Assembly: GCA_004431415.1 (NCBI GenBank)
Contig: QPMI01000482.1
Coordinates: 310,001-374,000 of the forward strand
Origin: Cyanophora paradoxa CCMP329
Lineage: Eukaryota > Plantae > Glaucophyta
Reading direction: 5' to 3'
DNA: 64,000 nucleotides
Shown here: positions 30,775-55,045 of the stretch, one piece after another
Layout of the letters: every line of letters starts with the position of its first letter
Position numbering within the stretch: the stretch's first letter is position 1
The notes under the pieces: model-generated
Told to the model about the DNA's origin: nothing
Databases searched by the model: none
Seen by the model: the letters and a program-made list of their open reading frames with translations, nothing else
Made by a program: the position numbers and the translations under genes

Positions 30775-31010
30775 GAATATCCTATTCATGCGCCGAATAA
30801 CATATAGAATATCCTATTCATGCTCCGAATAATTCGCAAGTTTCCCGTAGATTCTGCCCGGATCATCCTGGATCCAGAGTTCCAAAATTTTTTGTAGGCC
30901 CAGGAGACCCCCAAAAAATTTTTCGGCCGGAACCCTGCCCGGATCTGCCCGATTCTGCCGCAATTTCCCGTAGATTCTAGATATATATAGATCTGCAGGC
31001 TGCAGCTCCA
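30775..31010. repeat. Direct-repeat-rich degenerate TE fragment
   Basis: GAATATCCTATTCATGC x2, TTTCCCGTAGATTCT x2, CTGCCCGGATC x2. Confidence 0.5.
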
Positions 31011-31089
31011 TGGAGATTGAACCGCGATTCAGCGATTCTGCGCTCAGGTGGAAAAAACGCATCAATAGCCCCTGAGCCTGGGCCTGAGG

Positions 31090-31375
31090 TACCGTAATCC
31101 AGAATATTAAGGTCTGCACTTTATTATGTCGTCCCCAAATTATGTCGCCGAAAACTTGACATGACGACATAATTTGGGGACGAGTCCCGGACCGGGCCGG
31201 ACGACATAGTAGGGCGTGCTTAGTGCTATACCGGGGTACCCCCCCAATTTTACCACCCCATACAAGCCTGAAAATTTCATGCCGACATAATTTGGGGACG
31301 TCATATTTCTCATAGAGAAGGGTCCGGATTTCAAACGACATAAATTTGACCGTCATATTTTCCTGGATTACGGTA
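31090..31375. mobile_element. Tc1/mariner-type MITE (TA TSD)
   Basis: TA+CCGTAATCCAG at 31090-31102 and its exact reverse complement at 31363-31375; internal inverted CGTCCCCAAATTATGTCG / CGACATAATTTGGGGACG. Confidence 0.8.
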
Positions 31376-31880
31376 GGGCACTGGCCAGTGGCCAGCCAGG
31401 TGACCCAGGTCTCCCTTTGGCCAGCGGGCCAGCCCAAGCCGACAAAGCCTTGCCAGCGGCCCGGGGCTGGCCGCCAGCTTCCAGCCAAAACTTGGCCGGC
31501 CAGCTGGCAACCAGCCTCCAGCGCTAGCTAGGAGCCGAAGACTCGGCTGGGCCAGCTGGCCAGCCGACCAGCCGCAGAGCCCCGGGCCCCGTTGTTAAAT
31601 GAAATTGGTGTCTTAGAAACGATTTTAACTGTTTTATCGTGCACTGTAACTTAAGTCTGTAAGCACTGTAAGAATATAAGCAGTTAACGTTGATCTTATC
31701 AAGCCACGGTTTACTTAGCCACCCCCTCAAGCCCCACTCCTAGCCTGGAGCCGACCCCCCAGCCAGTGTCGCCGACCGGCTGGCCGCCCGATAAAGCCGA
31801 AAAAGGCTGGCCCCCGGCTGGTCAACAAATCGGGCGGCTGGGCCAGCCTATAGCTAAAAGGCCAAAACCAGCCAGCCAGC

Positions 31881-32158
31881 TACCGTAGAACACATAATTA
31901 TAAATACCGCGCCCGCTTAATTATACCGCGGTACCAAATTACCGCGTCAAGAGTTAAATTGTTTTAAACGCGGTGGTACCGCGGTAATTATCTGATGATC
32001 ATGAGAGGTCACCGCATACAGTACCCCCCCTACATTACCGCCCCATACAAGCCTCAAAGTTTTAGGACGCGGTAATTTGGTACCGCGGTATTTTGCTCTA
32101 CTAGGCTAGATGGCGGGCCGGGTTTTAATTATTTAATGCCCGACGGACATGCACGGTA
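31881..32158. mobile_element. Related degenerate MITE
   Basis: TACCGT...ACGGTA ends; internal 26-bp inverted repeat ATACCGCGGTACCAAATTACCGCGTC; shares the core GTACCCCCCC..TTACC.CCCCATACAAGCCT with the 31090 element. Confidence 0.6.
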
Positions 32159-32546
32159 ATATTTAATGCACCGCGGTGCCACCGTGGCACCGCCTCAGTG
32201 ACTAACACTGACTACCGGTATAGTATCATAGCCGATTCATAGGTAGGCTAGCTATAGGCTGGCTAGCCTACTAGGCTACTGAGCCTACGGCTAGCTATAC
32301 TATGTTAGTAGCAGCGCCTAGTACTACTACTAGCCTACTAGTACCGTAGTAGTACGGTACTACGGTAGCAGCGCCTATACCGTAGGTCCGTAGCAGCAAA
32401 AGCTAGCCGCTGAGCGCTGCTACACACAAACGGTGACAAACCTGACTGCAGCTGAAAGTGAAAGCGCGCTCGCGCTCCCTCAGCCTCTTTTGTCGACGTC
32501 AGATCTGAAAGTTGCAACTGCAGCTGCAGCTGGGCGCTTATCGATT

Positions 32547-35500
32547 ATGGCGCGTTCGATGGGTCGCGATGGGGATCGCCCGCGGCCGGTCATGATCAGG
32601 AGGCCTCTCGCACTAGTGCCTAGGCCTGCGCTGCTACTCTGGCTTGCAGTGGCGGCGCTTGCCCTCATCCTCGCCTCGCACGCGGACGCCGCGTCGCCGG
32701 CGGCGGTCGGGAACGAGCTCCTGCGCCTCGACTGCGGCGCCCGCCTGCACCTCTTCCCCACCGGCTTCATGAACGCCAGCCTCGACCTCAGCCGCCTCCT
32801 CAAGGGCTCCGGCACCGCCGAGCTCTTCACAAGTGCGCCGCGCGCAATGGCAATCTCACGCTTAAGCGTATATGCATGTGCAAAGCTCGCGATTTCGAAC
32901 GAACGCGGTTGCGGTCGCGCAGAGAAGCTGAAGGACCGGTTCAAGTGCATGATGGATCGCGAGCAGGCCGGCTCCTCGTCCCAGCTCACGGATCCCGACT
33001 GGGTGACCGGCTGGAGCTTCGGGCCCCAGGCCCTCGTCAACATGCTCCGCACGACCGCCCGCAAGGGCTACGCCTGTGCGTCTACTTACAGATGTAATTA
33101 TACGTATATGCGCATGCAGCACTTCGAATTCCGAATTCGAATTCCGGCATTGAATTCACATTCGCGACAAATCGACCCGACGCTCGCGATGCGCGCGCGC
33201 ATGCGCAGTGCTGCCGGAGGCGGCGCGGAAGGCGATGCGGAAGACGTACAGGGGCCTTCCGTTCTTCTGGAACGCCTTCTACAACGCCGAGCCCCCAACG
33301 CAGGCCTGGCTCCCGGGTTCGTCGCGACCACTAGCTATAGTACTGTGCATGTCATCGATATCCTCCCATGGCCAATCGCGCACATGTCAGACACGTGCTC
33401 CGGCAACGGCCCCTGCTACATGACCATCAACGCCCGCGCCACTTTCGGGGCCGTTTTCAAGGTATACACACTCGAACAATAGGCCCCAGCCTCGTCCTTT
33501 CATTCAAATTTATTATTAATTATCGTCGAACGAATGCCAGGTCGCGTACGACTTTTGCCCGGCGACGAGCCTGCCCTTCGTCTCCGTCGGCTGCGAGGGC
33601 AGCGCCTGCGAGCGCTTCACCCGCCCCTGCTCGGTGCGTTGCGATTGTCGCGTGATTTTTCACATGCTGGCAATTTTTTCAATTGTCAATATCAATGATT
33701 GATATCGATTGCCACGAACAGACCGACGGGGACTGCCAGACGAGCGCATCGGACACGGGCGCGAAGTGCCTCAACCTCTTCGAGAGCCCATCGCAGAAGC
33801 AAGTCTTCACCTTCCTCAAGGTCCGCTACATTTGCGCTCCTCTGTGAATAACTCTCCGACTGCAGCTGTGGCTTCGAATTCGATGTTGACGCGTACGCGT
33901 CGCCACAGGGCCTGGGCATGTACGACGTGGAGGACAAGGAGGATCTGGTGGCAAACGTGATGCGCGACCTGCTCGACTACTACCGCTCCGTCCACGGGCT
34001 CGCCCCGGCGCCGTCCACGGATGCGAGCCCGCTTCTTTGTTGTTTGAATAATTCGAAATTTTACTTTTTGCATTCCCTGACTGACTTGTCCTCGGGGCCG
34101 GCCGCGGCTCCGCTCGTGATCTCTGCAGGCCGTCTCTTACAAGTTCTGCCTTGCCACTGCACGTACGTCCTTTGATTAATATTTGCACTATCTAAATTTT
34201 GCTGATGGTCGGCCCTGCATGTCGGATGTCCACGATTTTTCTAACTCACCGCGCAGCTCGACTTGGCATCACCGCAAGTGACAAAGCGGAGCTTCTGTAT
34301 TTGAATAACAAGCTCTTTTCCAACAATTTCACCATCCCTAAAACTGGCGGATTAACGGACTCGTGCGCCACGGCGCTCAGCGACTGCGGCGCCTCAAGCC
34401 CTCAAGCCAATGTTCTAATCTCTTTACTCAGCTTCGAGGCGATCTACCACTACGTGACGAAAGACATCATGGGCTGCGCCGCGGACGCGAACGGCCTCAC
34501 GACCTGCTTGCAGGTCTCGTCCTGGGACGGTCCGCACTCTCGTGCCCCGCGCTCGGCGGGGCCTAGGCCTGCTTCGATCTTCATGAAATTCAACGGAGTG
34601 TGCCCTTCGCAGGGAAGCTGGCGAGCGGGGAGTCGGTGGTCTCCGAGGCGCGCAAGCAGGGGCGGGACATCGCGTACTCGGGCATCCGCGTGGTGATGGA
34701 CAAGAAGGAGCCCGTCACCAAGCTCCTCGCCTTCGACTGCGAGGGCGAGCTCTCATTTCATATGTTGCCCGCCTGGCGCACTGCCGCTCACTTCACTGCC
34801 GCGCACAGGCGGCGTCCACGTCGGCCTCATGAACTTCGGCGTCTCGGCGCGCGTGCCCTTCGCCCGCCCCTTCGCCGCCTGGCTCGGCGAGTATGTCAAG
34901 GGCCTGCAGGCGAGCATCCGCGCGGGGGCCGTGCACGTGGAAGCGGTGTTCGGTAGTGACGCCGGGCGCAGAGGGCGCGCTACGCCGCGCGGTCGATCAG
35001 CTTGAGCGATGGCCAGCTCGTTTACTATCTGCCTTGGAGCGCAGGCTACCTCCTGTGCGTCTCAATGATGTTATTACCTTAAGCTTTGTCTGATTCCTAA
35101 CAGTCCAACGCAGGTCCACGTTCACAAACGCGCCAGGGAAGCCACCGCAGCCGGCCCTGACCAGCTACTACGCCAACGAGAACGTCACTCTCTTCGATGT
35201 GCGCGCTCAAAAATTGCGAGCGGCTTCAATTCAAGTCTCGTATTAGAACCTGACGATCGCGTGTTTCTTGTTCGCGCAGGTGAGAAGCACAGACTGCAGC
35301 CTGGAAACGATCGCGAGCAAGGGGTACTGCCTCGCTAGAATCGGTACTCCCCGTTTGTTTCACTTGTATTCAAATTAAACTCTTTTTCCGTCTGGCTACC
35401 CGCCCGCCCCTGCTCCGGGCCCTGTTGAGCGTCCGTTCTCACCCTGGCCTCCTGGGCGTCCCCCGCAGCCAAGTACTTCCCGAAGGACCTGAAGGTGGAG

Positions 35501-38500
35501 GCGGGGCTCGCCCAGTGCCACGGCGAGGCCGCCGGCCTCGCCGCCTTCGAGATCGGCGTCTCCGGTGCTCGCGCCCCAGCTGCCTGCAGCCCGCGCTCGC
35601 GCTTGAGCTCGCGATCGAGCTGACTCCGTCGTGCACGCATGCGCAGGAACCGGCGCGGAGCTCTTCACCATCCACCAGGTTCGCCGGGGACTCGGTTTCT
35701 GTCTAGCCACCCGACCCCCGCCCGCCTCACGGTGTCGATCGTGGCCGGCCCCCAGGGCTGCGACACGAGCGCGGCGTGCGGGGGCACGAGCGTGTGCGAG
35801 AACGTGGAGGCGCCCCTCGAGGAGTTCTTCGGCCTCCCCGTCGGCTTCATCAAGCTCTACGACCTCGTCTCCAACGCCTTCTGGGGGTGCGCTGCGGGTT
35901 GCCCCCGATCCTATTCTTCTCGTGACCGTTCGCAGGAACGGGCCGCTCCCCGCGCCGCAATTGGATACCATTCCGTTTGCTCTCAACCAAATCAAGATAG
36001 TTGATGGCCCGGCGTGCCTCGCGACTGCGAGTTGCAAAATGTGTGCTCGGGTTGCTTTATTGAATTCAATTCTATTGAATCTCTCGCTCTCTTCGATATC
36101 TTTAAAATTGTTATTAATATTTGATTTGCAGAACGGTGGATGTCGCCTGGAAATACCGGGTAGAAGACCATTACCAGCGCCTACCTGTCGATATGAGGAA
36201 TGTGGAAGTCAGATTGAAGGACAAGTCAGATAACGTAATACCCGTGACGGGAGTCCAGTGTGCCACCCGCAGGACGCAATATGGGTACACGTACAGGCAC
36301 TTGACACGCATCTCCGATTGCTTCGACGAATCGGGGACGCCCCGGAAGACGAATACTGCCGGCACGGATGAGTACGAGCTGATCGAGAAGACGCAAGACT
36401 CGTGGTCCATCCACGACACCTTGTATTCCGATTTTTACAAGTACTCCGAGGGAGCTTTTATTCCGCAATATAATTCCTCATTCTACGCATCTGATAGCGT
36501 TGAATTCGTGAGTGCCGTATTCGATTCCACATGAATCTCGTATTTCAAAACAATTTACTGATTGTATAAGCGCATGCACAGTCGCTGTACAACGAGACGA
36601 GCTCTCGTAGCTACTCTACTTCCAAGTACCGCGTCGATGTTGCTCGTATCGCAAAGGTACTTCTAAAATAAAATCGAAATTAAACCGGAACGTGAACGTG
36701 GAAGGTGCTGATCATGAGAGCGCGCCGGCAGGTGGAGCTGATTCTGAATACCGGCGCCACCCCCGCTTTGCTGGACTCCCGCACCCTCTCGGCGCCGCCG
36801 CCGCCGACGTCTGGCGTGCACTCCTGCGTTAGGAACTACAGGCGCGTGCGCGCGCGCGACGTCAAAGCGCCAGCTCTTTGCTCTAACAAAAGGCGCAGAA
36901 CGTCTTCCTTCAGCGGTGAATGGGTCGCCAGCGGGGGAGCTACCTCTGAAAAATGCTATCCAGTGTGAGCTCAAAGTTTTTAATTCTTTTAGATTGGATT
37001 GGATTCGTATATATACAGCGCTCCCAATTGCAATGCCCACTTCTGCTAGCGCTCACAATGGAGTCGATGTCCTGCAGGATTACATTGGAAGAGGCTTTCA
37101 AGCAAAAACTGCTCAATATTGTTGGGATGCGATCGACCTTTTTCAGACCGACACGCTCTTCATACGATTATTCGCACTATGTACGCATTCTTAATTTAAT
37201 TTATTTTCCGTACATGGGACTTTTCCTTAATTGAATTTATTTTCCTGCTCGCGTGCACGTGCACGTGCTTCGCAGACCGCAGATATCGCATATTCAGCTA
37301 ACGCACCGCATCCGTTGCTGATGAACACTCTAGTAAACGTGATGTTCGAAACGAAACCTATCCGCTTTTCGGAGACTTACGTCAACAAGACAACGCAATA
37401 CGGGGAGCTCTTTCAGGAGCAGTACGAGAGACAGCTCACGTATAACACTTTGACCGGATCGGGAGAGATACAGCCTGGGGGCATCTTCCGGATACCGGTG
37501 ACCTCGTCTTTCACGAGTGCTCTCGTGCATAACTGTTCGGGATGGAATCCCTGGGATTCAAATTCATGGCCACCCCCTCCGGGATGCGACGCCTTCTTCC
37601 CGTTGTACAAAACGGGCACGATCTACTTTTTCTTGTACGCTCATGATCATGGTCTTGTGCTCATGATGATCGTGAGCCTCGATCTAACAAAGCGCTCGTT
37701 TGTAGAGAGAACAAAGCCGAGGGCTGGAACAAGTCGACAGGGCTAATCGCGCCATTCTCCCTCCCCGACATCAGCGGGCCCCCCGAGGTGTATGAAGGAT
37801 GCAGGTGAGGTTTCATCAATTGTTAGCGAGTGCTATAGCTCCCGCTACGCTCCAGATGTCTTTAGATTTGTTCAATGGCACCGGCCGCCTACTTACAGTC
37901 TGCTGCAGTCTGCACCGTAGCTGGAATTCGAAGGATGGTCAGCTGGGTGAATGGAAGCTGGCCTGCCCCACCTGTGCCTCACCCGCTGGATACTGGCCGC
38001 CCGCTTTGTACAGCGGATCCGGATACTGGTCTTCAGGTCAAGGTGTTTCATATCCGGAACTGTTCAACCGAGTGCTCGTTCCGTCTGCATTCAACTCGAC
38101 GGCCTCCGGGTTTTGCACCGATGTCGCCGCATTCTGTGCGGACGGGACGTCGGCTCGGACGTACTACGCCGCCAACTGCGCCTCCATTCCAGACTCACGT
38201 TCCATAACTACGGAGAAGCTACCAAACGTTAAACAAACACAAACAGGGGTTCTACCGGGAGAAGTAAAAGGACCCGTGGTATCACAATCATGCTACTGCA
38301 CAAATGACCAATACTGGTCTGGTGGATGGTCCGGCGGTGTTCAGACGTCGACTTGCTATGTGACCTATTTCAGCTACGGAAGCCCTTCCACTTCGTGCAG
38401 CTCCGGAAGCGAATGTCGTTGCAGCAAGACCGCTGCGGACAGCTTGCTCAGCACCATCTCGCGCAACGCCGCCTTCAAAGCGGCCCCGGTGCTCGCCGAG

Positions 38501-41235
38501 GCGGTCAACGTCCCCGCCACGTACTTGGCGCGGCTGGTTCAGGCCATCTACACAAGGTGCGCGAGTACTTTCTGTAGCTCGTGCTGCGTGAACGTGCCGC
38601 CGCCGGATCTTTACTTACGCTTTTCGAATCCCTCGCGCGCGCATTCTCGTGGATGCAGTAACATAAGAGTGAGCACATCTAGTTCTACATTATATTATCG
38701 ATTTGGATCCGGATGCAGATAGATCTGACCGCAAGTTTGCACGTGCAGGTCTGGAACTGGTACTTCGAGCCGGCGCTGCACACCCACGCTGCCGTCAGAG
38801 GAAGCCGGAACATATCGGAGGACGCGACAGTCTTCCAGTTCGGGCCGGAGGTGCACGAGCTGCTCGAGGGGACGTGCCCCGCCACCGTCCCCGCCTCGTC
38901 CGCCGTCTTCTGGCGCGACCTCCTCAACATGCAGGCGAGCCGCGCGCTGTCCTGGCGCTAGAAAAGTCTCGCCTCATTTCCCGGCGCGCGTACGCGTGCA
39001 GGCGGACCGGGCGGGGCGGCCGAAGATGGCGGAGGCGAAGGCGAAGATCTGCCTCCCGATGCCGCTGGAGGAGATGGTCGTGGGCGAGGCGCCGCGCACC
39101 CCCGCCGGCCTCGTCCTCACCGAGGCGCGCCCCCTCCCTCCGGGGCCCTCCCCCTAGCCTCGAGGCGCGGCGGCTGCGGTTGCGGCTCACTGGGAGATGC
39201 GCACGCGCAGGCGTCGTCCCTCCCCGCCGGGAACCTCCTGATGAACGTCACCCTCGCCCTCAGCATCAGCAGGCGCGCCGCCGCTGCCGCTGCCCCGCAT
39301 GAGCTTAAGCACGGCTTGCGCTGCTTCGGATTCGCTGTGCTGATCGTTTCTCCCGCGCGCAGGGCGGAGTTCACGGCGGAGAAGCAGACGCAGTTCCTCA
39401 ACGCCATCGCGAGGCAGTTCAAGATCCCCCCGGGCCGCCTCCGCATCCTGTACATCGAGGCGCGCTCTTGCGCCTCTGCCACATGGATTCAGTGCCGACG
39501 TATTCGCGCAGGACGTGGCGCGCAGACGCAAGCTGCTCGCCGGCGGCATTGCCGTGACCGTCGAGGTCCAGAGCGCGCCGGGCTCCGACGCCGCTTCCGT
39601 AAGCTCGAGCTTCGAATTCAGCGTCGACCTAATCACAAATGATCATGAATAGTTGTGACACGCATATGCCGATCGACAGGTGACGAGCTCGATCCAATCG
39701 GCGGTGAACAGTGCCGCGTTGCGGCGCGAAGCGTTCACGTTCGGGGACGTGCCTGTCTCTGGAGGATTCGCTACCGTGCGTACACGTACCGTACCCCGCC
39801 CCTCCAGCTCCCATCAGACCTTCGCTTCATATTGACATAAATACAAGCATGCATGTTGATATCTGACGCGATCGAACGTTCCGCATGCGCGCAGGTCAAC
39901 GTCCCGGGGGCGGTTGGGGCCGTTCAGATGGGCGACGACTCCGTCAAGGACGCCCGTGAGCTCCACGTTTTAAACTCCCATCCCGGCTGGAGCCTTTTTC
40001 AATATTAATTCAATCACGGGTCGTGCGCAGAGTTGATCAAGAACCTCCCTGGAGTATCGTCGATTCTCGCGAACATCAACAGCACTTGCGCCGCCATAAC
40101 TTCCTGTGCCACCTGCACGGCTACAACTTGTGCGTATTCAGACAATTCAATTTTCTCATATTTGCAAAGCTATCGACGGTTGCAAATGAACTCACGCGCA
40201 AATTTAAACCTGTCCAGATCAGTGCGTGTGGTGCGCTGGAGCTTGCACATCGTCGGCGAGCTGCATCACATCCGCTGCTGTAATATCCGACAGCGGCTCG
40301 TGCTCGTTCGTCAGTGCGAAACCTCGCCTGGACCTGTCGCGCCAAATAGTTGTAACCGCGCCGCTAATCTCATGACCAGGCACATTCCGGCAAACGTTCA
40401 ACACGACCCAATCGCTGCCCGACGCGTTCTTCACGAACCAGACCGTCAAGGACGAGCTGGCAGTGTGGTTCGAGTCCATTCTCAGCGTTCAGAAAGGCGC
40501 AGTGCGGGTGCGTGCCATATCAATATTTCAACATGGCTTCCGGATCCGCTACCGCTACCGCAGTTGACTTTCGCGAACCCACCGCAGATTCTTTCACTTG
40601 AGCGAGGCTCCGTCATTGTGAACGGCCAGGTGATCAAAAAGATTCTTCCAATCTCGAAATTAGCTGCCTGTCTCGAACTCGCCAGTAACGCCCGGGCTCG
40701 CCGCGCGCGCGCGTGCAGGTCACGTCGGCGGAGTCGCAGGCGGCGGTCGACGGGCTGCGGGAGAAGCTGCGGCGGGCGCTGGGGACGACCACCGCGCCCC
40801 GCACCATCGGCGGCTTCACCTTCCTCCCCGCCTGCCCGGGCGCCGGCTGCTTGGACACCTCGGGATCGACGACGACGCCGACGTCGAGCGGCGACGGCAC
40901 GAACACGAACGCGATCATCGGCGGCGTCGTCGGCGGCGTCGGCGGCGCCTTCCTCATCGCCGTCATCGCCGGGCTGTGGTGCGAGCCCGCGCACGCGCGC
41001 TCGCCATCGACGCCTATTCGAGTGCCTGTTTGTGACCGAGCTCCCGCGGCCGTCGCGCAGTTACTGTCGCCGTCGGAGCAACCAGCGGAAGCGCACGGGC
41101 GCGGGCGGCGAGAAAGGAAAGCACGACATGGAGAGCAACGCGGCTGCGTCCGCGCCGGCGTATGGGGAGCCCTCGAAGGCTTACCCGCCGCCGCCGCCGG
41201 CGCCGGCCCCGCTCACGACGGACGTTCGTCTTTAA
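32547..41235 (+). CDS. Large type-I membrane protein: signal peptide, Cys-rich ectodomain, SEA-like/PSI-like/SEA modules, TM, short tail
   Basis: Signal LLLWLAVAALALILASHADA; many exons; SEA-like EFTAEKQTQFLNAIARQF..RRKLL; PSI-like CAAITSCATC..CVWC; ILSLERGSVIV; TM AIIGGVVGGVGGAFLIAVIAGLW; tail ends TDVRL*. Continuity was not checked at every junction. Confidence 0.65.
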
Positions 41236-43479
41236 GAGAAGAGAATTCTTCGCGCTTGCAAATGCCGCCTCGTGTGCACCCGCAATTGCCATATATACTT
41301 TCCTCGCAATTGATTTCGCCGCCTCGCGATCGTCTGCACTCGCAGCTAGTGCCACGGTGTGGCTTCGAAATTCGATGATCATGATATCATAGTTCGGGAC
41401 TCATGATCAACAGCCGGCTTCCTTCCCCAAGTTCCGGAATTGGTGATGTGATTCGAATTCCGGTTCTCTTTCAAGATTTATTATGTAATATGTATCGTCT
41501 GGCTTTCCGAAGTTCAACGCGCGCCAGCTTTCGGTTTTGATTAGTAACTTAGTAAGTCGCGATCGGTTATACATAGTCGGCTTATAGTGCCTTTCCTTGT
41601 CATCAGAATTAATCTATCCTCTCAAAATTAATACTATGATAGACATGGCCTTGGTACCGGTTGAATATTTATCTCAAGATCACAGCGCTCCGAAAATGTA
41701 CAGCCCCCCCCCCCCCCCTCCCCTCCCCCCCACCCCCCCCATCCCCCCCATCCCGCCCCTCGTCCACCCGGGACCCCCTCCACCTGCCCGACCCCCCATC
41801 CCGCCCCTACGCCTCCCCTCCCCACTAGGCCTGCGCATGCGCAGCTCCATGCATGCGCACAGATTTCACAGCCTGGCAGCTTGCGCAGGGCCTTGGAGCG
41901 GCCGTAATTGTAAGCCTGACCCCCAGGCCTAGGTCTGCTCCCCCTGGCTGCCCCGGCCCCTTCCCTTCCACTGTAACCCCCCTCCCCCGCTCCCCCCACT
42001 CCCTCCCTCTCCCGTATACGTACGCGTCCCCCCCGGGCCCGGTGCCCCGGCCCCCTCCCTTCTCCCCGCCGCACCTCGCTCGCGACGGAGCAAGTCTAGG
42101 AAACAATCCGGGCCGGGGCTCGCGGTCCGACGGTTGTACATGTATGTCGCTATAGGCCTAGGCGTTGTACTTGTATCGCGTACGCGCGCGAGGCGCGCGA
42201 GGCGCGGGCCGGGTCCGGATCCTAATCCTAATTATATAAGTATAAAATTCGAAGCTTTGAGCCTAGGCCTGCGAGGCGACAGATCCGGACTAGGCCGAAT
42301 CGAAGAAGACGATCGCGAGCTCCGAGGCTCGAGCTCTAGATCTATAGATCTAATTCGAAGTGCGTGCATGCGCACTGCGCATGCGGCATTTAAATTTGCA
42401 TGCGCATTGCGGACGTACTGCGCATGCGCATGCGAGAGCGATCGATATCGCGATCGATATCGCGAGAGCGAACCGCGGCTCGCCCGAGCTAGAGGCGCGC
42501 GCGGCGCCGGCTCCGAGGCTCGCGAGTCGCGACGTCGACCCGCTTGGCCTTGGCCTGCCAGGCTGCGCATACACATGCGCCCGAGCTCGAGGCGGCGGCA
42601 GGACGATCGCGAAGCTGGTGAAGGCGGCGGCGGATCCCGGAGTCGCTGCGCATGCTAGCTACATATATAACGCTGCGCATCCTGCAGCTCGCTTTTTTTC
42701 ACAAAGCCCCACGGGGGCAGTACTATATATATTGGCAGTACGACTGGGAAAGGCTACACGGGGCGTAACCTGCAGCTGTTTAAGCTCACAGCGAGCCGCA
42801 ACAGTTCCGAGGGGGCCCCCCCAGGACCCCCCCGGGCCCCCCCCGGGCCCCGTAAGCTTCAGGCCCCCCCCGCCCCCCCCCGGGCTCAGCCCCGCCCAGC
42901 CCCGCCGCACTCCCCCGGCCCGCCCCCCAGCCCCCCCTCCGGGGATCCCCCCCTAACCGCTGTGATCCGCTTTCACAGCAGGGAACCGGTTGGGCCTTCC
43001 GTAGGCATCCGCAGGACCAAGACGCTGGTATCCGATGATCATGATCTCCCGCGCCAGGTCATTCGTTGCTAGTAGGGCTGGAACCCACCCAAACTGCCTT
43101 AAAGCTTCGACCAAGCGCCCCGGGAGGGGGGGGGGGGGGGGAGGGGGGAGGGGGGGCGCTAGTGGCCGCGGGGGGTTGGGGCATGAAGGGGGGGATCACG
43201 GGGGCCGGGGGGGGCTGCGGGTTGGGGGAGCCTTGAGGGTGGCTTGGGAGGGGGGGGGCTGGGGGGAGGGCTCACGATCGGGCATGGCCAGCTTGGGGGA
43301 GGCTGGGGGGGCAGGGGCCGCGCGCGTTGAGGGGGGGGGTACGTAGGGGGCCGGGCAGTGATAGCGTGTCGGGGCGAGCTCGAGCTAGGGGGGGGGGGGG
43401 GGGGGGAGCGAGGGGCAGGGCCGGCTGGAGGTCAGTAGTGGCTATAGCTATAGGAGGGCGCGAGTGACTGATCATGAGG

Positions 43480-45898: not shown

Positions 45899-47684
45899 TC
45901 ACTTGTTGCGGCGGGGGCCGGGGCCGGGGCCGGGGCCGGGGCCGGGGCGGGGGCCGGGGCCGGGGCCGGGGCCGGGGCCGGGGCGGGGGCCGGGGCCGGG
46001 CCGGGGCCGGGGCCGGGGCGGGGGCGGGGCCGGGGCCGGGGCCGGGGCCGGGGGGCCGCCCGGGGGCCTCGGGGCGGTCGGGGACGATGCCGAGCCGGAC
46101 GAGCGCCGCCGCCGCCTCCAGCAGCGTCTCCTTCGCCGGCCGGTACCCCACCCCGAGCGTCCTCGCCCCCTGCACCGCCCCGTCGCCCCGCGCGCCGAGC
46201 GTGAGCCGCGGGGCCGGGGCTGGGGCTCGATCGGGGCACCTTGCCATTCTCATAGGTCATGGGGGCGGAGGGCGCGCCGGCCGCGCGCGTCGGGAGGGGG
46301 AACCGGGCGAACTCGGGGGCCAGGAGGCGGGCGATCTGCGGGCGGCTCATGATCAGCGCGGCAGGCTGGTCACCGGAGGGGGTGCGCCCGCCTCGAGGAC
46401 GGGGCGGGTTCGCGTCTCGCCGGCGACGATGTAGCGTCCGGCGGGTACGCGCTCCCGATCGAGGGCGGCCACGTGCGCGGCCGCCGCGTCTCGCACGTCT
46501 GGGGTACCGGGTGAGGACCTGGGGGGGGGGGGGGGGTTCGGGGGTACGGCGGACCGACAACGGCGTACGAGGCGGCGGGTGCGCCCCTCGCGGCGTACGT
46601 CCCGTCCAGCATGCCGGCCACGAGGCGGACCTGAACCGCCGCCCCGCTTGAGTCCGTACCCCGCCCCGGGCGGGGGGGGGAGGGGGAGGGGGGCGTACCG
46701 AGAACGAGTCGGTCCGGGGGCTGAGCGGGGGGCCGAGGATGAGACAGGGGAGGATGGTCACGAGGTCGATTCCTGCGGGGGGGAGTGATTCGCATGGAGC
46801 ACGAATCAAGGGCGCCGGCGCTGGCTCCGTACCCGTCCGAGCGGCTGCGATGAGGTCCTACGCGGAGCCGTTTAGGACGCCTGGGCAGGCGATGCCAGGG
46901 GCGGCCAACGCGTACCCAGGCGGCCCGCTCGGCGAGGGCCTTGCTGAGGGGGTACGGCGAGGACTGGAGCGAGGCGCTGGGGGCCAGTCAGCGGGGGCGG
47001 GCGGCGCAGCTCGGTACTCAGAGCAGCGCAGGGGCACCCGTCGTTCCAGTCTTCCTCGCTGTACCCCCGCCCGGAGGGCCGCCTCCGCGCGCGGACGGCG
47101 GCGACGCTGCTGGTGAGGACGACGCGGCGCACGCCTGCACGGATCGCCTCGCCCACCACATTCCTGCGGGCGGACTCTTGCGATCAGTCCTCTTCGCTTG
47201 AACTCTTTCGAGTGCGCATGCTCGCAAGGGGCCGCGCCTGGTGCCGACGAGGGCGGGGTCGACGAGCTCCCTCTGCGGGTCCCTCGCCGTCGTCTTGAAG
47301 GGAGACGCGACCTGGCAGCCGCGGGCGCGGGGCTCAGGATCGATCAGCGCACTATAGCTAGAAGGACTTGAAGCGCCCGCGCTCACGTGGATCACGTACG
47401 CGCAGCCTGCGCCACGGCGCGCGCAGGCCCGCGCTGGGCGATAAGCACGCGGCAACCGGAGCCGCCTCGCGGCTCGCACCCGCGAAAGCGTCCCTGAAGG
47501 AATTCTCTTCGAGAAGATCGCACTCGAACAGGTCGCACTTGCCGCGCAGGTGCGCCGCGCGCTCGTCAGTGGCGCGCCTCACCGTCGCACGTACGCGGAA
47601 GCGGCCGGCCGCGGAGGCCTGCAGCTGGTCGACTACGTGCGATGCGAGGAAACCTGACCCCCCAGTGACGCACACAACCTCCAT
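45899..47684 (-). CDS. NAD(P)-dependent epimerase/dehydratase (CCR/DFR/Gre2-like extended SDR); 3' end uncertain
   Basis: VCVTGGSGFLASHVV, VIHVASPF, LVDPALVGT, RVVLTSS, YPLSKALAERAAW, VTILPCLILGP. Confidence 0.9.
45913..46052. repeat. (GGGGCC)n hexanucleotide tract
   Basis: About 20 interrupted GGGGCC units at the 3' end of the SDR gene. Confidence 0.9.
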
Positions 47685-47900
47685 CGATGTACAGCTGCAG
47701 GCGCGTGGACCGCCCGCATTGGACACCTAAAGACTAGGCAGCCTGCAGCTGGCGGGCTGTGGCCGCAGCCTTTCGCCAGCCACCCTCAGGCAGCCTTGAC
47801 AGACGGGGTACGCTCGACGTCGCGCCCTGGGCTCGTCTGAAGAGGCAGGGGCTCGCAGCTGCAGCGTCACAGGCGGAGGATACAGCGCACAGGCGCGCGC

Positions 47901-48896
47901 ATGGGCGCGTCCGAGTCCAGTGAGCGCCGCCGGTCGAGTGGTTCAGCGTTCCTTGGCGCGGCCACGGGCGGCGCGGCTATCCTTGGCGGTGCGCTGCAGG
48001 CTTGAATCACTCAGTGAACTCAATTCTTAACTGTAATCTTCGCTAGGTCTCGCCTTGCTCATCAGCAAGCTGCTGGACGGCGGCGAAGAGCAGGACCAGC
48101 AGCAGGTGCAGAGACAAAGACAGGAGAGCCTGCGTGAATGGCAGGTACGCCGCGCCTGGGCTGCTCTGCGGTTGCGCCGTGCTGCGGCACTGGTCCCTTT
48201 CGAATTCTCACGCGGAGCTGTCGAGCCGGAGCGCACTCTAGCCCTTGAGGTTAACGTTTGAGGTCTCGATTCTGCCAGGCTGATCACTTGACCCCGCAGT
48301 TTGTGAACAAGGAGGACGGCATGAAAGGCGGCTGCAGCGCATGCAGCGGCTGCGACAAGTGTCCCGCCTCCCCGCGCGCGGAGGCGTCCAAATTTGATGA
48401 CCGGTGCGCCGACCGCAGCCGCCCTTCGCCGTCCCGGCGGCAGCGGCTCAGCCACCGCAGGCTTGTCTGCGCAATCTGCATTGAGTCTTGGATCGGCCGC
48501 TCCCCTGTCGCCCTTGGTGCGAGCCGCCCCGCGCCCCGCGCCCGCCCCGCACCGCTCGGCGCTCCTCGACCCGACCGCGCCGTTGCGCCGGCAGACTGCG
48601 GGCACGTGCTCTGCGCCAAGTGGTGCGCCCGGGTCGATCCCCGAGAGGGCGGCACGGCGGCGCTCACCGGTCCGCGCCCCGCGCAGCCTGGAAACGTACG
48701 AGCAGTACCACGCCTCGCAGGTGCCCCCCCCCCCCCCCCCCCCCTTTCCCCCCCCACTCCCCCCCCCCTTCCCTCCCCGGCGCGGGGCCTATCCGACGGT
48801 CCTCGCTGGCAGCCGGACCCGGACGACGAAGAGCTGGCGTGCCCGAGCTGCCGCACGCCCATCCGCAACCCCCGCAGCCTCCTCGGCATCTCCTGA
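47901..48896 (+). CDS. Small C3HC4 RING E3 ligase with N-myristoylation motif and hydrophobic segment
   Basis: MGASESS; AFLGAATGGAAILG|GLALLI; CAIC...DCGHVLCAKC...CPSCRTPI. Confidence 0.8.
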
Positions 48897-50479
48897 GCAC
48901 GCGCACCACCCGGCGTCGACGACCCTTCAACGCTTCCCGCCGAGCCTCTTAGGCTTGCCTCGCCCCCCGCCCGCCCACGGGCACCCCGGGGCCGGGCCCC
49001 CCGCCGCACCCCTTCCGTGCTTCCACCTTTCCTTCTCTAGATCTCCGCGAGCTCCCCGTAGGGCTCCCGCCCGCTGGCGGCAGCGCGCGGACGCGACGCG
49101 GCTAGTCTAGTTGCCTGCTTTCGAATATAATTAATCATGCCATGCTGAGCGCGAGCCGCAGTTGCGGCGCAGTGGCGCCGCGGCGATTCTCATCAGGCTG
49201 ATATGTCGCCCTCGCGCTCGCGCTCGGCGCGCCGCGCGCGGCGTCGGCGGCTCTAGCTCTGATGAGGCGCGCGATCGAGCTCGGGGCGCGCTGCGCATGC
49301 GCTGATCATGACTCAGTGAGCCGCGGCCGCGGCCATCGATATCAGCCGATCGATCGCGATTCGCGACAAGTTGACAGTGAGCGACAGATTCGCCGACATG
49401 TACAACAGCAACCCGCGGCCGGCGGGCCCAGCGCCGGCGCCGGCCCGGCCCGGGCCGCCCGGTGTGTCGGCCCGGCGGCGGGGCCTGCGCTGCGCATGCG
49501 CGCGCGCGGCGCGCGCGACGCGCGTGCGCACGTACGTATACGTATACGCGTCTGGCCTAGTTGCGGCCGCCGGGCGCTAGCGCTAGCTCAAGGGTTCGGT
49601 TCCTGCTGTTTCCGCTACGTTGTACTTCGAATCCCTGTGATTCCCGATACCGTGACTTGTATCCTCGTTGTGTACTACGAGTGGGCACGCCCACCGTAGA
49701 TCTTTAAAAAAAAAATAGCTCAAGTGCGCATGCTGCGCTTTTTTATCCCAATATTTCCGATGATAATATATGTAACGTACTGATACTAGATTCAATTAAA
49801 CATATGATATCCAAACATATAATTTATATTATATCACGTCCTGCATGCATGCATGCATATACATCAATATATATCCAAGTAAATTTATTGGAACAATTAG
49901 ACGTTTAACTGTACCCGTATGGCCAAGGCCTTAGCGGCGCAAGTTAGCGCCAAGCCGGCGAGGACGCGTACGGTAGCACTGCTGCTGGGTCGACTTCGCA
50001 GCTCGCAGATCGCTCGCAGCTGAGTGCGTGCGCGAGTAGCACAATCCTGGCTGCGCGAATACGCGAGTTAGACGGTCTGCCAAGAATCAGAATCGATTTC
50101 GCTCTGCCGGCCCGACAGTCGGGGGGCTCGGCTCGACGCGACGACCCCGCAATCCGGCGGCGCGTGCACGCCTTGATTGCCGGGCAGCCTGCATCTTTGT
50201 AGTTGCGGCTTGTCCGCGCGTGGCCGCCTCAGCCGTTACGGGACAGAGCGTCCGGCGGCAGTTAGCCGCGCCCCGCTCCAACGGCTTCGGCTTTCGTCTT
50301 TCGTCGAGTGCGATTGATCTCGCAGCCCGTCGGCTCGCCCGCCCGCCCGGCAGCGATCTCGCCGGCAGCAGCGCGCGGCCGGTGACCCGGCGGGATGCTC
50401 CTCGCGAGCTGCGCCACGCAGAGGCCGTAACCCGATCGCCGGGCGCGGGAGGCGTCTCCCGATCGCCGCCGCCGGCGCC

Positions 50480-53400
50480 ATGTCCGCCTTCGCGGCGGAG
50501 GTCGAGGAGGTGCGCCCTGCTCGGACCCTCGAGCGCGCCCCCCGGCGCTCACGCCGGCCCCCGCGGGCGCCTCCAGGTGTTCAACACCGTCCTCTACGAG
50601 TCGATCGAGTCGACGGGGTGGCGGCCCTGCCTCTCCCACGGCGCAATCACCGTCGAAGTCAGGCGCGCCGCCCCGGCCCCCGCCCGCACCCCGCACCCCG
50701 GCCCCGCCCCCGGGCCGCGCCTGACACGCCTCGCCCCCGCGCGCCGGCAGGGACCTCCCCGACAGCAACACGCTCTTCCGCGTGGTGATCGAGTACCCCG
50801 ACATCCCGGCCGAGTTCGCCGCCCGCTGCCTCCTCTCCAGAAACCGCGGCGTGGTCCGCCCTTTCCCCGCCCTACCCCCCACCCCCCCCCCGCCCCCGTT
50901 CGCCCCGCCGACGCGCACCCCGCAGGAATACAACGAGGCAGACACCCCCCGCCCCTGAATCCTGTACCCCCCGCTCATCCCCCCGGGCAGTTCGTGAAGA
51001 GCGAGGAGATGACCGAAGAGCTGCCCGAGCTCTCGTGCGAGGACCCCGCCGCCCCCGACGGCATCGGCCGCGCCGCCATCTACGAGCAGTTCAGCTCCTA
51101 CTTCGGTCTGCGTACCCCCTTCCGCCTCCCCCCCCCTTACTTTCGCCGCAGGCATCGCCGTGGAGACGACGCTGCTCTACGCGACGCGCAGGCGAGGCTG
51201 CAGCGCCCGCGACCCCTCGCGCCCCTCGTGATGGCGGGGGCGCAGGCTGCCGGGCCCCCTCGGGGTCCTCGGCATCAAGGTCCCCGCCCAGCGCTCCGAG
51301 GACGGCCACTGGTGCGCCCCCGGGGCCCGAGGCCGCGGGCCGGGGGTACGTCAGGGGGCCTCGCTCAGCCACGGCCTGCCCCGCAGGAGGCTGGCGCACT
51401 TCCAGGCGCGGGTGAAGACGCTCTCGGGAATGCACGTCGCGCCGATGCCGGTCAGCGGCTGCCGGTGCGTGGAGGGGGGCGGGGAGGGGGTGCCGCGGGG
51501 GGCTGGAGCGGGGGCGGGCGGGGGCAGGGTGGCGGCGGTGCACTTGTCGCGGGGCTGGCTCTTCGAGTTCATGCCCCGCTACCTCAACCTCCAGGTCGTC
51601 TCCCGCATCTTCGGCAAGAACCAGGTCCACATGGCCAGGGTGCGCCCCCCCCCCCCCTCTTCCCCCCCCCCCCCCCCTCTTCCCCGCCCCGGGCGACCCC
51701 CTTATACCTCCTCAGCTCCTCCTGAGCGAGTACGCGGCTGAGGGCGGCTCGGCCCCCGCCGGCGGCTTCTCGCCCCCGTACCCCCGCTTCCGGGACTCGA
51801 TCTTCGCCTCGGGGTCCTGCGGCATACCCCCCCACCTCTCGGCCGCCCGGCGGGCCTCGGCGGACGCCGGCCTGGGGCCCGACGGGGAGGGGGACGGGCC
51901 CCCCGCGCCCACGCCCCCCTCCATCTTGGTGTCGTACGGGAGCCCCTTGTCCCCCGGGCCGGAGGCGGGGGCGGAGGCGGGGCAGGCGGCGCCCCCGCCG
52001 GCGGCCTCCACGGAGGAGCTCTTCTTCGACCTCGTCGGGGTGCAGGCCCCGGGCCCCCAGACCTCCCGCGACACCTGGGGCCCCCAGCAGCCCCTCGACG
52101 CCTCCCCTCCCTCCACCTCGGTGCCCCGCCCCGCGCACCCCCCCTCCCGCCCCCCCTCACGCCTCGTGGGGCCCGCAGGGGAGCGGCGAGAGCTCCGCTG
52201 ACTCGCCGGCGACGTCGGCGGCCGCCGCCGCGCCCAAGCCCATCCAGGTTCGACCCCGCCCGGCGCCCTTTTCTTCGAGTTCGGGCCCCGATGGGAGCCG
52301 AACCGGCCCCTCCCAGGTCATCCGCGACGACATCGGCGTCACGAGCGAGCCGAGCGTCATGTCCCGGGTATTCCTCCCCACCCCCCTATCCTCTCCCCCC
52401 CCCCCTCCGCCGCGTACCCCGGCGTGGCTGACGGGTGGCGGGGAGTACGGGGAGGCGATGCGGGTCTCGCTGGAGATCGCGCTGCGGCTGGAGAGCATGT
52501 CCCTCCACGAGCCACCCCGCCCACCCTCCTCCTCCGCCCCGCCCTCGCCCTCCACCCGCGGGCCCGCCACCCCCGTCGCCTCGTGGGACGCCCCTCCCCC
52601 GCCCTACCTGCCCCCGCCCCCCAGCGCCGAGCGCGCCGCCTCGCCCGGCGGGGAGGCGCCCAAGCGCAAGCCGGGCGAGGGCGGCGCCGAGCTCGCAGAC
52701 CGCAGGCTGCACCCTCCGCCGCGGCCCTCCGCCCCCCCGCCCGGCGCGCCCCCGCCGAGGCGCCTGCAGCCGCTCGCGGCGCAGCCCGGCGGGGCGGCCC
52801 CCGCCCACCTGGAGGCTGCGGCGAGCGCGGCGGCCAGCGCGGCGCCCCAGAGACCCCAGCGGAGGCGAAAGAAGCCGGTACCCGGCGCCGCAGAGGCCCC
52901 CGCCCCGAACGGGTCCCCTCCCCCTCGCCTCTACTCCTCTCCTTTCTCTCACTTCCTTTGCTGACGCCCCCGCCCCCTTCCCCCTCCCCCCTCCCCCCTC
53001 CCCCCTCCTCCTTCCGGTTCCACTTTTAGATTCATTCAGTTCTGCCGGTCGAAAAAAGACGGCGTGCTGCTCGAAAACCCGAAGTGCGCTGTACCCCCGC
53101 CGCATCCCCTCCTCCCCCGCCCAACCCGCCGTACCCCCCGCGCGCAGCATCACGTCGCGGGAGATGGCCTCCATCCTGGGGGGTCCGCCCCGCCCCCCTC
53201 CCGGACCGGGGCCGCCGATCCTGTAACCCCCGGACTCACCGCCCCGCCCGGCGCAGAGATGTGGCGGAGGACGCCACACGCGGAGCGGGCCGGGTACCAG
53301 CAGGTCGGCCGGCGCCGGCGCCCCCCCTCCCCTCCTCCCCCGCCCCTCCCCCTCCATCTCCCCCCGCCGACGGGGCGCCTCAGGTGGCGCGGGAGGCGCG

Positions 53401-53866
53401 GGCGAGGGAGCTCGCCGCCGGGCCCAAGCCGGTGCGCGCGCCCCGGCGGCTGCCCCCCACGCCCCCGCGAGCCGCGAGCGCCGGCGGGGCGCAGCGGAAG
53501 GCGCGGAAGGCGCGGAAGAAGAAGGAGGCGGGGGAGGCGCCCCGCGGGAGGGCGGCCCCCGCGGTGCGCGTCAAGCCCGAGCCCTCGGGCCTCTCCGAGG
53601 AGGACGAGGCGGAGGAGGAGGAGGAGCTCGACAGCGACGCCCCGACCCCCGGCCCCTCGGGGGGGTACGGCCCCGCCAGCGCCCTCCTCTACAACTTCCC
53701 CCAGCTCCAGGCCCCTCCCTGGATCCACGTCACCGGCCCAGGCCGGCAGGGGCCCGTGTACCCGGGCGGCGCGAATCCCCGGCTCCCCGCCGAGCATGCC
53801 CTTGGCGATGTTCCCTCGGGGGCGTCGACGCACGCCGCGCCCGGCCCGCCGCGGCGGCCCGTCTGA
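50480..53866 (+). CDS. START-like domain + HMG-box protein (putative transcription factor)
   Basis: N-terminal START/SRPBCC-like region (GWRPC..LFRVVIEY..RGV|EYNE|FVKS..SGMHVAP..RGWLFEFMP), in-frame Pro/Ser linker, then APNG|FIQFCRSKKDGVLLENPN|ITSREMASILG|EMWRRTPHAERAGYQQ|VAREARARE. Confidence 0.75.
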
Positions 53867-55045
53867 GCTCACGTCCTCGTTTCTTTCGACGCTGCTTGTT
53901 TCACCTCGTCTAGTGCTCGAGCCGTGCGCACTGGCGCCGGGGTTCGAGGTCCCTCCGATCGAGCGACGGCCGGGCGGCCGACCGCGCGCCCCGTTTACGA
54001 CATAAGAGTTTCCATCCCACCGCCCTCCGAGGCTCCCCCGTCAAGTCGCCTTCTTCCGGCCCCTGAAGTGCTTAAGAACTTCTACATCCGCCCTATGTAT
54101 TCGGTTCACCGCCTGGATCAGGCTGCTCGCGCGCCGCTTCGTTTTTCTTAGTCTAGTGTACTAGGATTATTATACATAATTAGCTACTATCGATAACAAG
54201 CTACGTTTACAATCGACGGGAATATTTCGGCTTTGTGGTGGTCAATATGACAGTCGACGTCGACGTCGACGTCAATGCCATGTAATGCCGGGGGGAGTTC
54301 CAAATACTAGTCACTGAGTATTAGTTCAAATTCCGATCATCAGAATTCCAAGTTTGACTCGGCGGGAAACAAGCCGCGGCGCCGTGTACATGTTCATGAA
54401 AATTCATTGCCGACATCATCATGAGCACGCAATGCCGCCGTGTTCCGATTCGACTTGGCTATCCGATCAACATGTACATGTGATCATCTTCGAAATTCCG
54501 AGCTCGAATTCCAATTTCGAATCCGGCGGCCGATCATCCGAATTCGACTCGGCGGGAAACAAGTACTGTGATATTTGTGAAAAAGACTGCTACGTAAATA
54601 CGCTGCTGTGCACGTGACGGTATGAAATTGGCTGGACTGAAGCAACTTGCAGGAACTACCTGATTCATAGCCTAGTAGCTAACATTAACTCTTAAACTCT
54701 CAGGAAGTATTTTCGAACTCAAGTTCTAAAGGTTCTACATGTATGTAAATGTGCACGAAACGGCTGCGAAATGACGACTGTCGGGGGACACGTGCCTTCA
54801 AGGCTTGGCGGCAGTAAAGACTACTGAAACCAAATCTGAATCTTACTACACAGGCATATATAAAGCTAAATCTACTTGTACAAATCTAGGAGCTAGCATG
54901 CGCAATTTAGCAAGTTCGAAAGGGCCCCCTGAAATAACTTGGTTACCAAGGATCTCATTTGATCAGCAGTCAGGCAGGGCGAGCCAACCGAAAAAATGCA
55001 GCGTTGAGGAAACCTTGAAACCAAGCTAAAGACAATCTTAATTGT

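Follow-up and report, generated by a model that had tools for sequence, protein, structure and literature searches.

A START-fold domain and an HMG box in one gene of the glaucophyte Cyanophora paradoxa

Transcription factors coupled to a START domain have so far been a hallmark of the green lineage, where they form the families HD-ZIP III and IV, and the role of START in these proteins took two decades to begin resolving. HD-ZIP III proteins need their START domain in order to bind DNA, and this domain also binds phospholipids and promotes dimerisation; more generally, StARkin domains can control localisation, stoichiometry or stability (PMC10226595). Analysis of a stretch of 64,000 nucleotides from Cyanophora paradoxa CCMP329 (contig QPMI01000482.1, positions 310,001 to 374,000 of the forward strand; hereafter the window, with positions counted from its first letter) revealed a gene at 50480-53866 in which a START fold is joined to an HMG box. 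This combination is a real and undescribed architecture among START-linked transcription factors.

Gene model and public annotation

The gene lies on the plus strand and consists of 17 exons, running from an ATG at 50480 to a TGA at 53864-53866. Spliced by hand, it gives a frame of 749 codons with no internal stops, or 728 amino acids if an optional intron (53432-53494) is removed. Its 16 introns measure 46-117 nt, with 13 GT-AG and three GC-AG pairs. One nuclear C. paradoxa gene encodes this protein of about 749 amino acids, and we hold it highly probable that the single gene carries the START fold as well as the HMG box. The elements of the gene are given below; P0001 is its public counterpart, and the other P numbers denote paralogues of the same species.

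50480-51742, plus strand, including introns: START-fold domain, model residues about 1-222; fold evidence from paralogue P0002
52902-53410, plus strand: HMG box, from the end of exon 13 to the start of exon 17; Pfam PF00505 and AlphaFold2 (AF2)
50480-50509, plus strand: exon 1, 10 amino acids; GT donor at 50510; its AAEVEE is similar to the AAEIEP that P0008 has in the corresponding position
50577-50662, plus strand: exon 2, first helix and first strand of START; GC donor at 50663; not in P0001
50751-50850, plus strand: exon 3, START strands 2-3 and helix 2; not in P0001
50926-50937, plus strand: exon 4, 12-nt micro-exon encoding EYNE; GC donor at 50938
50991-51105, plus strand: exon 5, with the P0001 Met inside; paralogue-profile positions 83-120
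51152-51191, 51246-51311, 51387-51464 and 51528-51639, plus strand: exons 6-9, START strands 5-9 and C-terminal helix; as in P0001
51716-52120, plus strand: exon 10, last part of the START helix followed by disordered linker; FASGS at 51803-51817, LFFDLVG at 52019-52039
52179-52247 and 52317-52367, plus strand: exons 11 and 12, linker; as in P0001
52446-52912, plus strand: exon 13, helix motif, Pro-rich linker, RRRKK at 52860-52874 and first HMG residues
53030-53083, plus strand: exon 14, part of the HMG box
53148-53182, plus strand: exon 15, part of the HMG box
53257-53303, plus strand: exon 16, part of the HMG box
53384-53866, plus strand: exon 17, HMG helix 3, RKARKARKKK at 53495-53524, acidic run and disordered C-terminus

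The start codon in exon 1 is tentative, and the true start could lie farther upstream. The window has a guanine-plus-cytosine (GC) content of 65-80%, and introns are short and C-rich. The intron at 51465-51527 is 71% G on the coding strand, with runs of GGGG to GGGGGG, and may be prone to form G-quadruplexes; 11 of the 15 other introns are at least 50% C.

A query with exon 5 (50991-51104) returned a single protein, P0001 (EukProt tig00020830_g14471.t1, 646 amino acids, with a precomputed Pfam PF00505 assignment), at 100% identity. P0001 is the same as the hand-spliced model from residue 83 to the C-terminus, and the sole difference is the intron 53432-53494, an in-frame 63-nt GT-AG intron that is spliced in P0001 and retained in the hand-spliced model. 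The continuous frame from a START-like N-terminus through a linker to an HMG box, which had been proposed in a first-pass annotation of the sequence, is borne out by the 17 stop-free exons and by this identity. The stretch 53432-53494 separates HMG helix 3 from the basic tail and reads through without a stop; its splicing may represent an alternative isoform that alters the spacing between box and basic tail.

P0001 starts at a Met within exon 5 (MTEEL) and is missing the first four exons, comprising 82 residues, so that the truncated public model conceals the START-fold domain. Two 5' GC donors (50663 and 50938) and the 12-nt micro-exon at 50926-50937 probably account for the truncation. A third GC donor occurs at 51192, and its intron (51192-51245) is also used by P0001. 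The C. paradoxa genome paper, which employs the same contig and gene naming, reports 67.6% GC and 9.2 introns per gene with a mean of 86 bp; its models were produced with BRAKER1/Augustus, trained and hinted with RNA-seq, and are described by the authors as needing additional manual curation (PMC6704402).

Evidence for the first four exons was sought in the paralogues. Matching tblastn searches of the paralogues on the window were swamped by proline-rich matches, and a profile search was used instead, in which the profile was built from paralogues with P0001 left out and searched across the 64-kb window. The profile matched window exons 2-10 (exons 2, 3 and 5-10) in strictly collinear order:

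50601-50675, plus strand: exon 2, profile 25-48, 6.4 bits
50749-50847, plus strand: exon 3, profile 44-76, 23.6 bits
50991-51113, plus strand: exon 5, profile 83-120, 14.3 bits
51151-51192, plus strand: exon 6, profile 118-131, 3.4 bits
51241-51318, plus strand: exon 7, profile 130-153, 5.3 bits
51394-51471, plus strand: exon 8, profile 154-179, 14.6 bits
51502-51642, plus strand: exon 9, profile 169-216, 16.5 bits
51716-51754, plus strand: exon 10, profile 216-228, -0.1 bits, below noise

The scores of exons 6, 7 and 10 are near or below noise, and the weight of the result lies mainly in the collinear order; no other match above 6 bits to this profile was found anywhere in the 64 kb. Exon 3 showed 50% identity to P0004 (expectation value, E, 2e-9), and exon 2 matched P0008 by BLASTP with E 9e-4. 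The EYNE of the micro-exon aligns to EFNE or DFNE of the paralogues (SRNRAKEFNEF or DFNEF) with no insertion on either flank; since the paralogues lack such an insertion, the C-rich stretches flanking exon 4 must be spliced out. In each of the complete paralogues the part homologous to the P0001 N-terminus starts near residue 90-125. Judged by these comparisons, exons 1-4 are genuine and P0001 is truncated by 82 residues.

Domains and linker motifs

The fold of the N-terminal domain was modelled on the closest complete paralogue, P0002:1-240, using AF2 with a 12-sequence family alignment. The model has a predicted local distance difference test score (pLDDT) of 89 and a predicted template modelling score of 0.87. 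Its topology comprises a helix, three strands, two short helices, six long strands with a short strand at 154-156, and a 29-residue C-terminal helix, which is the order of elements of the START fold. The helix-grip fold on which the first-pass annotation had made its proposal depend is hence the fold of this model. In a Foldseek comparison of P0002:1-240 with the PDB, the first 48 matches were all true START domains (E 7.5e-9 to 1e-5) and included BmCBP, STARD10, STARD13, CERT, StAR, STARD5, ACOT11, STARD4, MLN64 and PCTP; template modelling (TM) scores of the top matches were 0.51-0.72, by query or target. VIA re-alignment of P0002 with START domains gave Z 18.5 and a root-mean-square deviation (rmsd) of 2.8-3.1 Å over about 200 residues, compared with Z of only about 13 for other helix-grip families (PYL receptors and polyketide cyclases). 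A structure search of the ESM Atlas placed the domain at TM 0.6-0.7 to START clusters, and by language-model features 26 of the 30 nearest clusters carry PF01852, with a score of 0.96. In the full-length AF2 model of P0001 the corresponding strands and long helix are also seen, with pLDDT 55-80.

Searches by sequence gave a different result. With a limit as loose as E 10, PF01852 matched neither the exons nor P0001 nor any of the 12 N-domain sequences, and no START chain was found in PDB sequence searches using phmmer with a single sequence or using the family profile. Exon-by-exon Pfam searches found nothing, the exons being too short. A weak match to BvgS (E 0.007) was taken as chance. Overall, the models indicate that the N-terminal 220 or so amino acids are a START-fold domain, nearest in shape to StARD proteins and not a demonstrable sequence member of PF01852. 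The START-like N-terminus claimed in the first pass is supported at the level of fold.

The HMG box of the gene is canonical and single. Pfam PF00505 matched P0001 459-516 with E 2.4e-10 and 41.2 bits against a cut-off of 25.4, in agreement with the earlier assignment of the C-terminal part to this family, and the match maps to 52902-53410 in exons 13-17. Because the box is split over these five exons, it is missed by lists of open reading frames (ORFs), as the first reading had claimed, and by exon-wise Pfam searches; the strings APNGFIQFC, ENP, ILGEMW and Y that the first reading had pointed to are all present. In the AF2 model of P0001 the three HMG helices occupy residues 461-477, 483-496 and 499-518 with pLDDT 95-98. 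Foldseek gave a probability of 1.00 to HMGB2, BAF57, SRY, SOX17 and SSRP1. The TM score by target reached 0.85, and the best matches (BAF57, SSRP1 and SOX17) had an rmsd of 1-2 Å over about 60 residues.

The presence of Asn at the base-contacting position together with a hydrophobic wedge residue (N-A-F-I/M) marks the sequence-specific class of HMG boxes. The window box reads P-N-G-F-I, where the aligned SRY reads M-N-A-F-I and HMGB1 box B reads P-S-A-F-F. The structure matches do not separate the SOX/SRY class from the HMGB class, and PDB sequence searches ended in a per-domain tie, with 25.0 bits for HMGB1 box B and 22.3-26.3 bits for SRY. On its residues, a SOX/MATA label for the box is plausible and no more than that; the SRY-like N-x-F-I at DNA-contact positions speaks for the label given in the first pass, and the overall score, tied with HMGB1 box B, favours neither class. 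Basic clusters occur on both sides of the box (RRRKK at 52860-52874 and RKARKARKKK at 53495-53524) and resemble nuclear-localisation signals.

Between the two domains lies the Pro/Ser linker expected from the first pass, about 320 amino acids long and predicted to be disordered apart from three short motifs. The three motifs are near-invariant across paralogues that are otherwise about 30% identical. Motif 1, FASGS(A/C)G, directly follows the START helix. Motif 2, (E/D)-L-F-F-D-L-V-G, forms a short helix at P0001 230-238 in the AF2 model; it is acidic and hydrophobic and may be read as an activation motif or, with a poorer fit, as an FFAT motif. Motif 3, E-A-x-R-A-S-L-E-L-S-L-R-L-E-S-M-S-L (of the form SLExxLRLESMSL), is an amphipathic helix at P0001 306-325 in the same model. 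The window copy of this motif (SLEIALRLESMSL, 52467-52505) has counterparts such that the motif occurs in 10 of the 12 family members scanned, and the spacing of its hydrophobic positions would fit a class-1a nuclear export signal.

A Cyanophora family and the possible role of the protein

A phmmer search of 1.84 billion representative proteins with P0001:1-135, without a length filter, identified 13 further proteins with E below 1e-3, of which 11 are C. paradoxa gene models on other contigs with 25-41% identity. The candidates P0007 and P0014 were rejected as repeat artefacts. A family-profile search added P0015; its candidates were mostly of low complexity and the search was saturated. The family thus consists of at least 13 C. 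paradoxa genes including the window gene, the source of the relatives being EP00741 Cyanophora paradoxa. No relatives outside Cyanophora were found among the 1.84 billion representatives with the truncated single sequence P0001:1-135 as query, and a word-based search with P0001 residues 1-135 returned only P0001 itself. A search of the Atlas with the whole of P0008 gave no cluster holding both domains, at scores too low to count. No description of a START-HMG protein was found in full-text searches of the literature, and recent papers on START transcription factors name no HMG partner. The suggestion in the first pass that the architecture is new has accordingly held among the proteins and papers searched.

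Pfam detected the HMG box in paralogues P0002 and P0008, and placed it just below the cut-off in P0003 and P0004. A family HMG profile found boxes in seven of the 13 models, with two each in P0002 and P0015, and no box in P0005, P0006, P0009, P0010, P0011 and P0012. The tandem HMG-like box pairs of P0002 and P0015 are without the Asn and most basic residues and, to judge from these substitutions, may no longer bind DNA. The family tree is star-shaped and unresolved, its terminal branches measure about one change per site, and it gives no direction for gain versus loss of the HMG box; the deep divergence of the paralogues indicates that the family is old. START, the three motifs and HMG follow each other in the same order at independent loci on other contigs, and on these sequences the recurrence is the strongest case for a real fusion over a merged annotation.

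In the explanation we favour, the window gene encodes a START-regulated, DNA-targeted HMG protein. The HMG box and its basic flanks would bring the protein to DNA, the START domain would serve as regulatory input by binding a hydrophobic small molecule (of the lipid, sterol or carotenoid class) and changing the activity of the protein, and the conserved linker motifs would be the likely effectors. In the preferred version the ligand would control nuclear access or activity via the linker motifs; alternatively, START might mediate self-association, as in HD-ZIP III. We rate the parts differently. The protein is likely to be nuclear and DNA-binding, the explanation as a whole has about even chances of being correct, and regulation of its activity by a ligand, argued from analogy, is somewhat doubtful. 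A fuller proposal, that of an independently evolved, nuclear-receptor-like multigene system of glaucophytes in which the START pocket acts as sensor of a lipid, sterol or carotenoid and so gates the HMG-box factor via export-like and activation-like motifs, we consider unlikely.

Several observations weigh against this explanation. No sequence profile recognises the N-terminus as START (Pfam and PDB profile search), so that a ligand pocket is not inferable from conserved residues. The confident fold is that of paralogue P0002, about 35% identical, and not that of the window gene; P0001 is without the first third of the domain, and its pLDDT there is only 55-80. Exons 1-4 and a single continuous transcript are read from sequence and not from RNA, and the export-signal and localisation-signal readings come from pattern matching alone. 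Six of the 13 family models are without an HMG box, and several of the existing boxes are degenerate (Ser or Ala for Asn, few basic residues); with the box absent or degenerate in many models, DNA binding is not the common denominator of the family.

Three other explanations were considered. The protein could be an architectural chromatin protein, whose HMG box binds or bends DNA non-specifically in the manner of HMGB or SSRP1 and whose START domain serves constitutively for protein interaction or for carrying lipid, and not as a switch gated by a ligand. Among single PDB sequences HMGB1 box B indeed matches best (E 8.5e-7), HMGB2, BAF57 and SSRP1 are among the fold matches, and the long disordered acidic and basic tails are HMGB-like. 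This explanation is nevertheless fairly improbable in our estimate, given that the box has Asn and Ile at the positions that read N-A-F-I in SRY and S-A-F-F in HMGB1 box B, and given the retention of START and the linker motifs across 13 deep paralogues, which suggests regulation. The HMG box missing in six of the 13 models and degenerate in others, and START and the motifs being the best-conserved parts of the family, would also be expected of a cytoplasmic lipid-transfer or contact-site family, in which START is the working part, ELFFDLVG an FFAT-like tether and HMG an accessory or decaying domain. The FFD core with upstream acidic residues recalls the FFAT motifs of CERT and OSBP. However, positions 1, 5 and 7 of ELFFDLVG do not follow the FFAT consensus, the Pfam scan found no membrane-targeting domain in P0001, and the window gene has a canonical HMG box (41 bits, pLDDT 95-98) flanked on either side by a basic cluster; we regard a lipid-transfer role as quite improbable.

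It remains to weigh an artefact, in which a neighbouring START gene and HMG gene have been read as one or in which the locus is a decaying pseudogene. Open frames are cheap at 75-77% GC, the gene was joined from its genomic sequence, and the authors of the genome state that the models need curation (PMC6704402). Set against this, all 17 exons are in frame and stop-free, the linker has no stop, plausible terminator or new start between the domains, P0001 as published contains two thirds of the START domain together with the HMG box, and independent models on other contigs show START, three motifs and HMG in the same succession. An artefact of this kind is very hard to credit, and a START-regulated, DNA-targeted HMG protein is the reading we carry forward.

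Sequence context and comparison with known systems

Long stop-free ORFs of 297-501 amino acids, antisense or out of frame, overlap the gene at 52386-53357 (minus strand), 50262-51155 (minus strand) and 50220-51725 (plus strand). They occur because the sequence is about 75% GC, and fit the bidirectional ORFs without transcription of the genome paper (PMC6704402). Further features of the window are as follows:

47361-47726, minus strand, upstream: first exon of a gene of NAD-dependent epimerase/dehydratase type (Pfam PF01370, E 3.5e-7)
48258-48893, plus strand: Cys-rich ORF, RING-like by eye, with no Pfam match
54140-54650, just 3' of the stop: AT-richer and probably intergenic, with (GTCGAC)n near 54255-54275 and several short repeated words
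30000-42000: 12-kb block with a GC fraction of 0.51-0.62, against 0.65-0.81 elsewhere in the window

Among known systems, nuclear receptors are a functional analogue only. In them, as in the proposed form of the window protein, a single polypeptide couples a pocket for a lipophilic ligand to a DNA-binding domain; neither of their domains is related in fold to those found here, where ligand gating is proposed only.

The nearest solved folds of the P0002 domain are animal START domains (STARD3/MLN64, its carotenoid-binding silkworm relative BmCBP, STARD5, CERT and ACOT11), which align over the whole domain including both terminal helices, with Z 17-18.5 and an rmsd of about 3 Å over 190-200 residues. 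Their sequence identity to the window family is 10-16%, with no profile match. These animal proteins carry lipids, their fusion partners are membrane-targeting or enzyme domains, and to our knowledge none is fused to a DNA-binding domain.

The window box passes the Pfam model and has the same three-helix HMG fold as SRY, SOX, MATA and HMGB proteins. It is SRY-like in having N-x-F-I at the DNA-contact and wedge positions, and its basic tail after helix 3 is placed as in LEF-1 and SOX. By score its overall similarity favours neither class, it has no SOX group motifs and no second box, and its fusion partner is unlike any in the SRY/SOX/MATA or HMGB classes.

The closest likeness in architecture is to HD-ZIP III and IV proteins (PHB, GL2 and PDF2), which, like the window gene, carry a START fold and a DNA-binding domain in one polypeptide; both belong to Archaeplastida. 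Unlike in HD-ZIP proteins, the DNA-binding domain here is an HMG box and not a homeodomain with a leucine zipper; no homeodomain was found by Pfam in P0001 or its paralogues. The order is reversed, HD-ZIP proteins having START on the C-terminal side of the homeodomain and the window protein having it at the N-terminus; the window protein is without MEKHLA or a second START domain, sequence similarity to PF01852 is not detectable, and the family was found only in Cyanophora. If the reading of a START-regulated HMG protein is true, the family would name candidate metabolite-responsive regulators in glaucophytes, whose gene regulation is almost unknown, and would offer a simpler, single-box system for studying START control of a DNA-binding domain. 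A second, unrelated family of START plus DNA-binding domain in a glaucophyte would show that the wiring of a lipid-binding fold to a transcription factor has evolved more than once. On the fuller, nuclear-receptor-like proposal, START-coupled transcription would have arisen a second time, by convergence, within Archaeplastida, with a DNA-binding domain different from that of plants.

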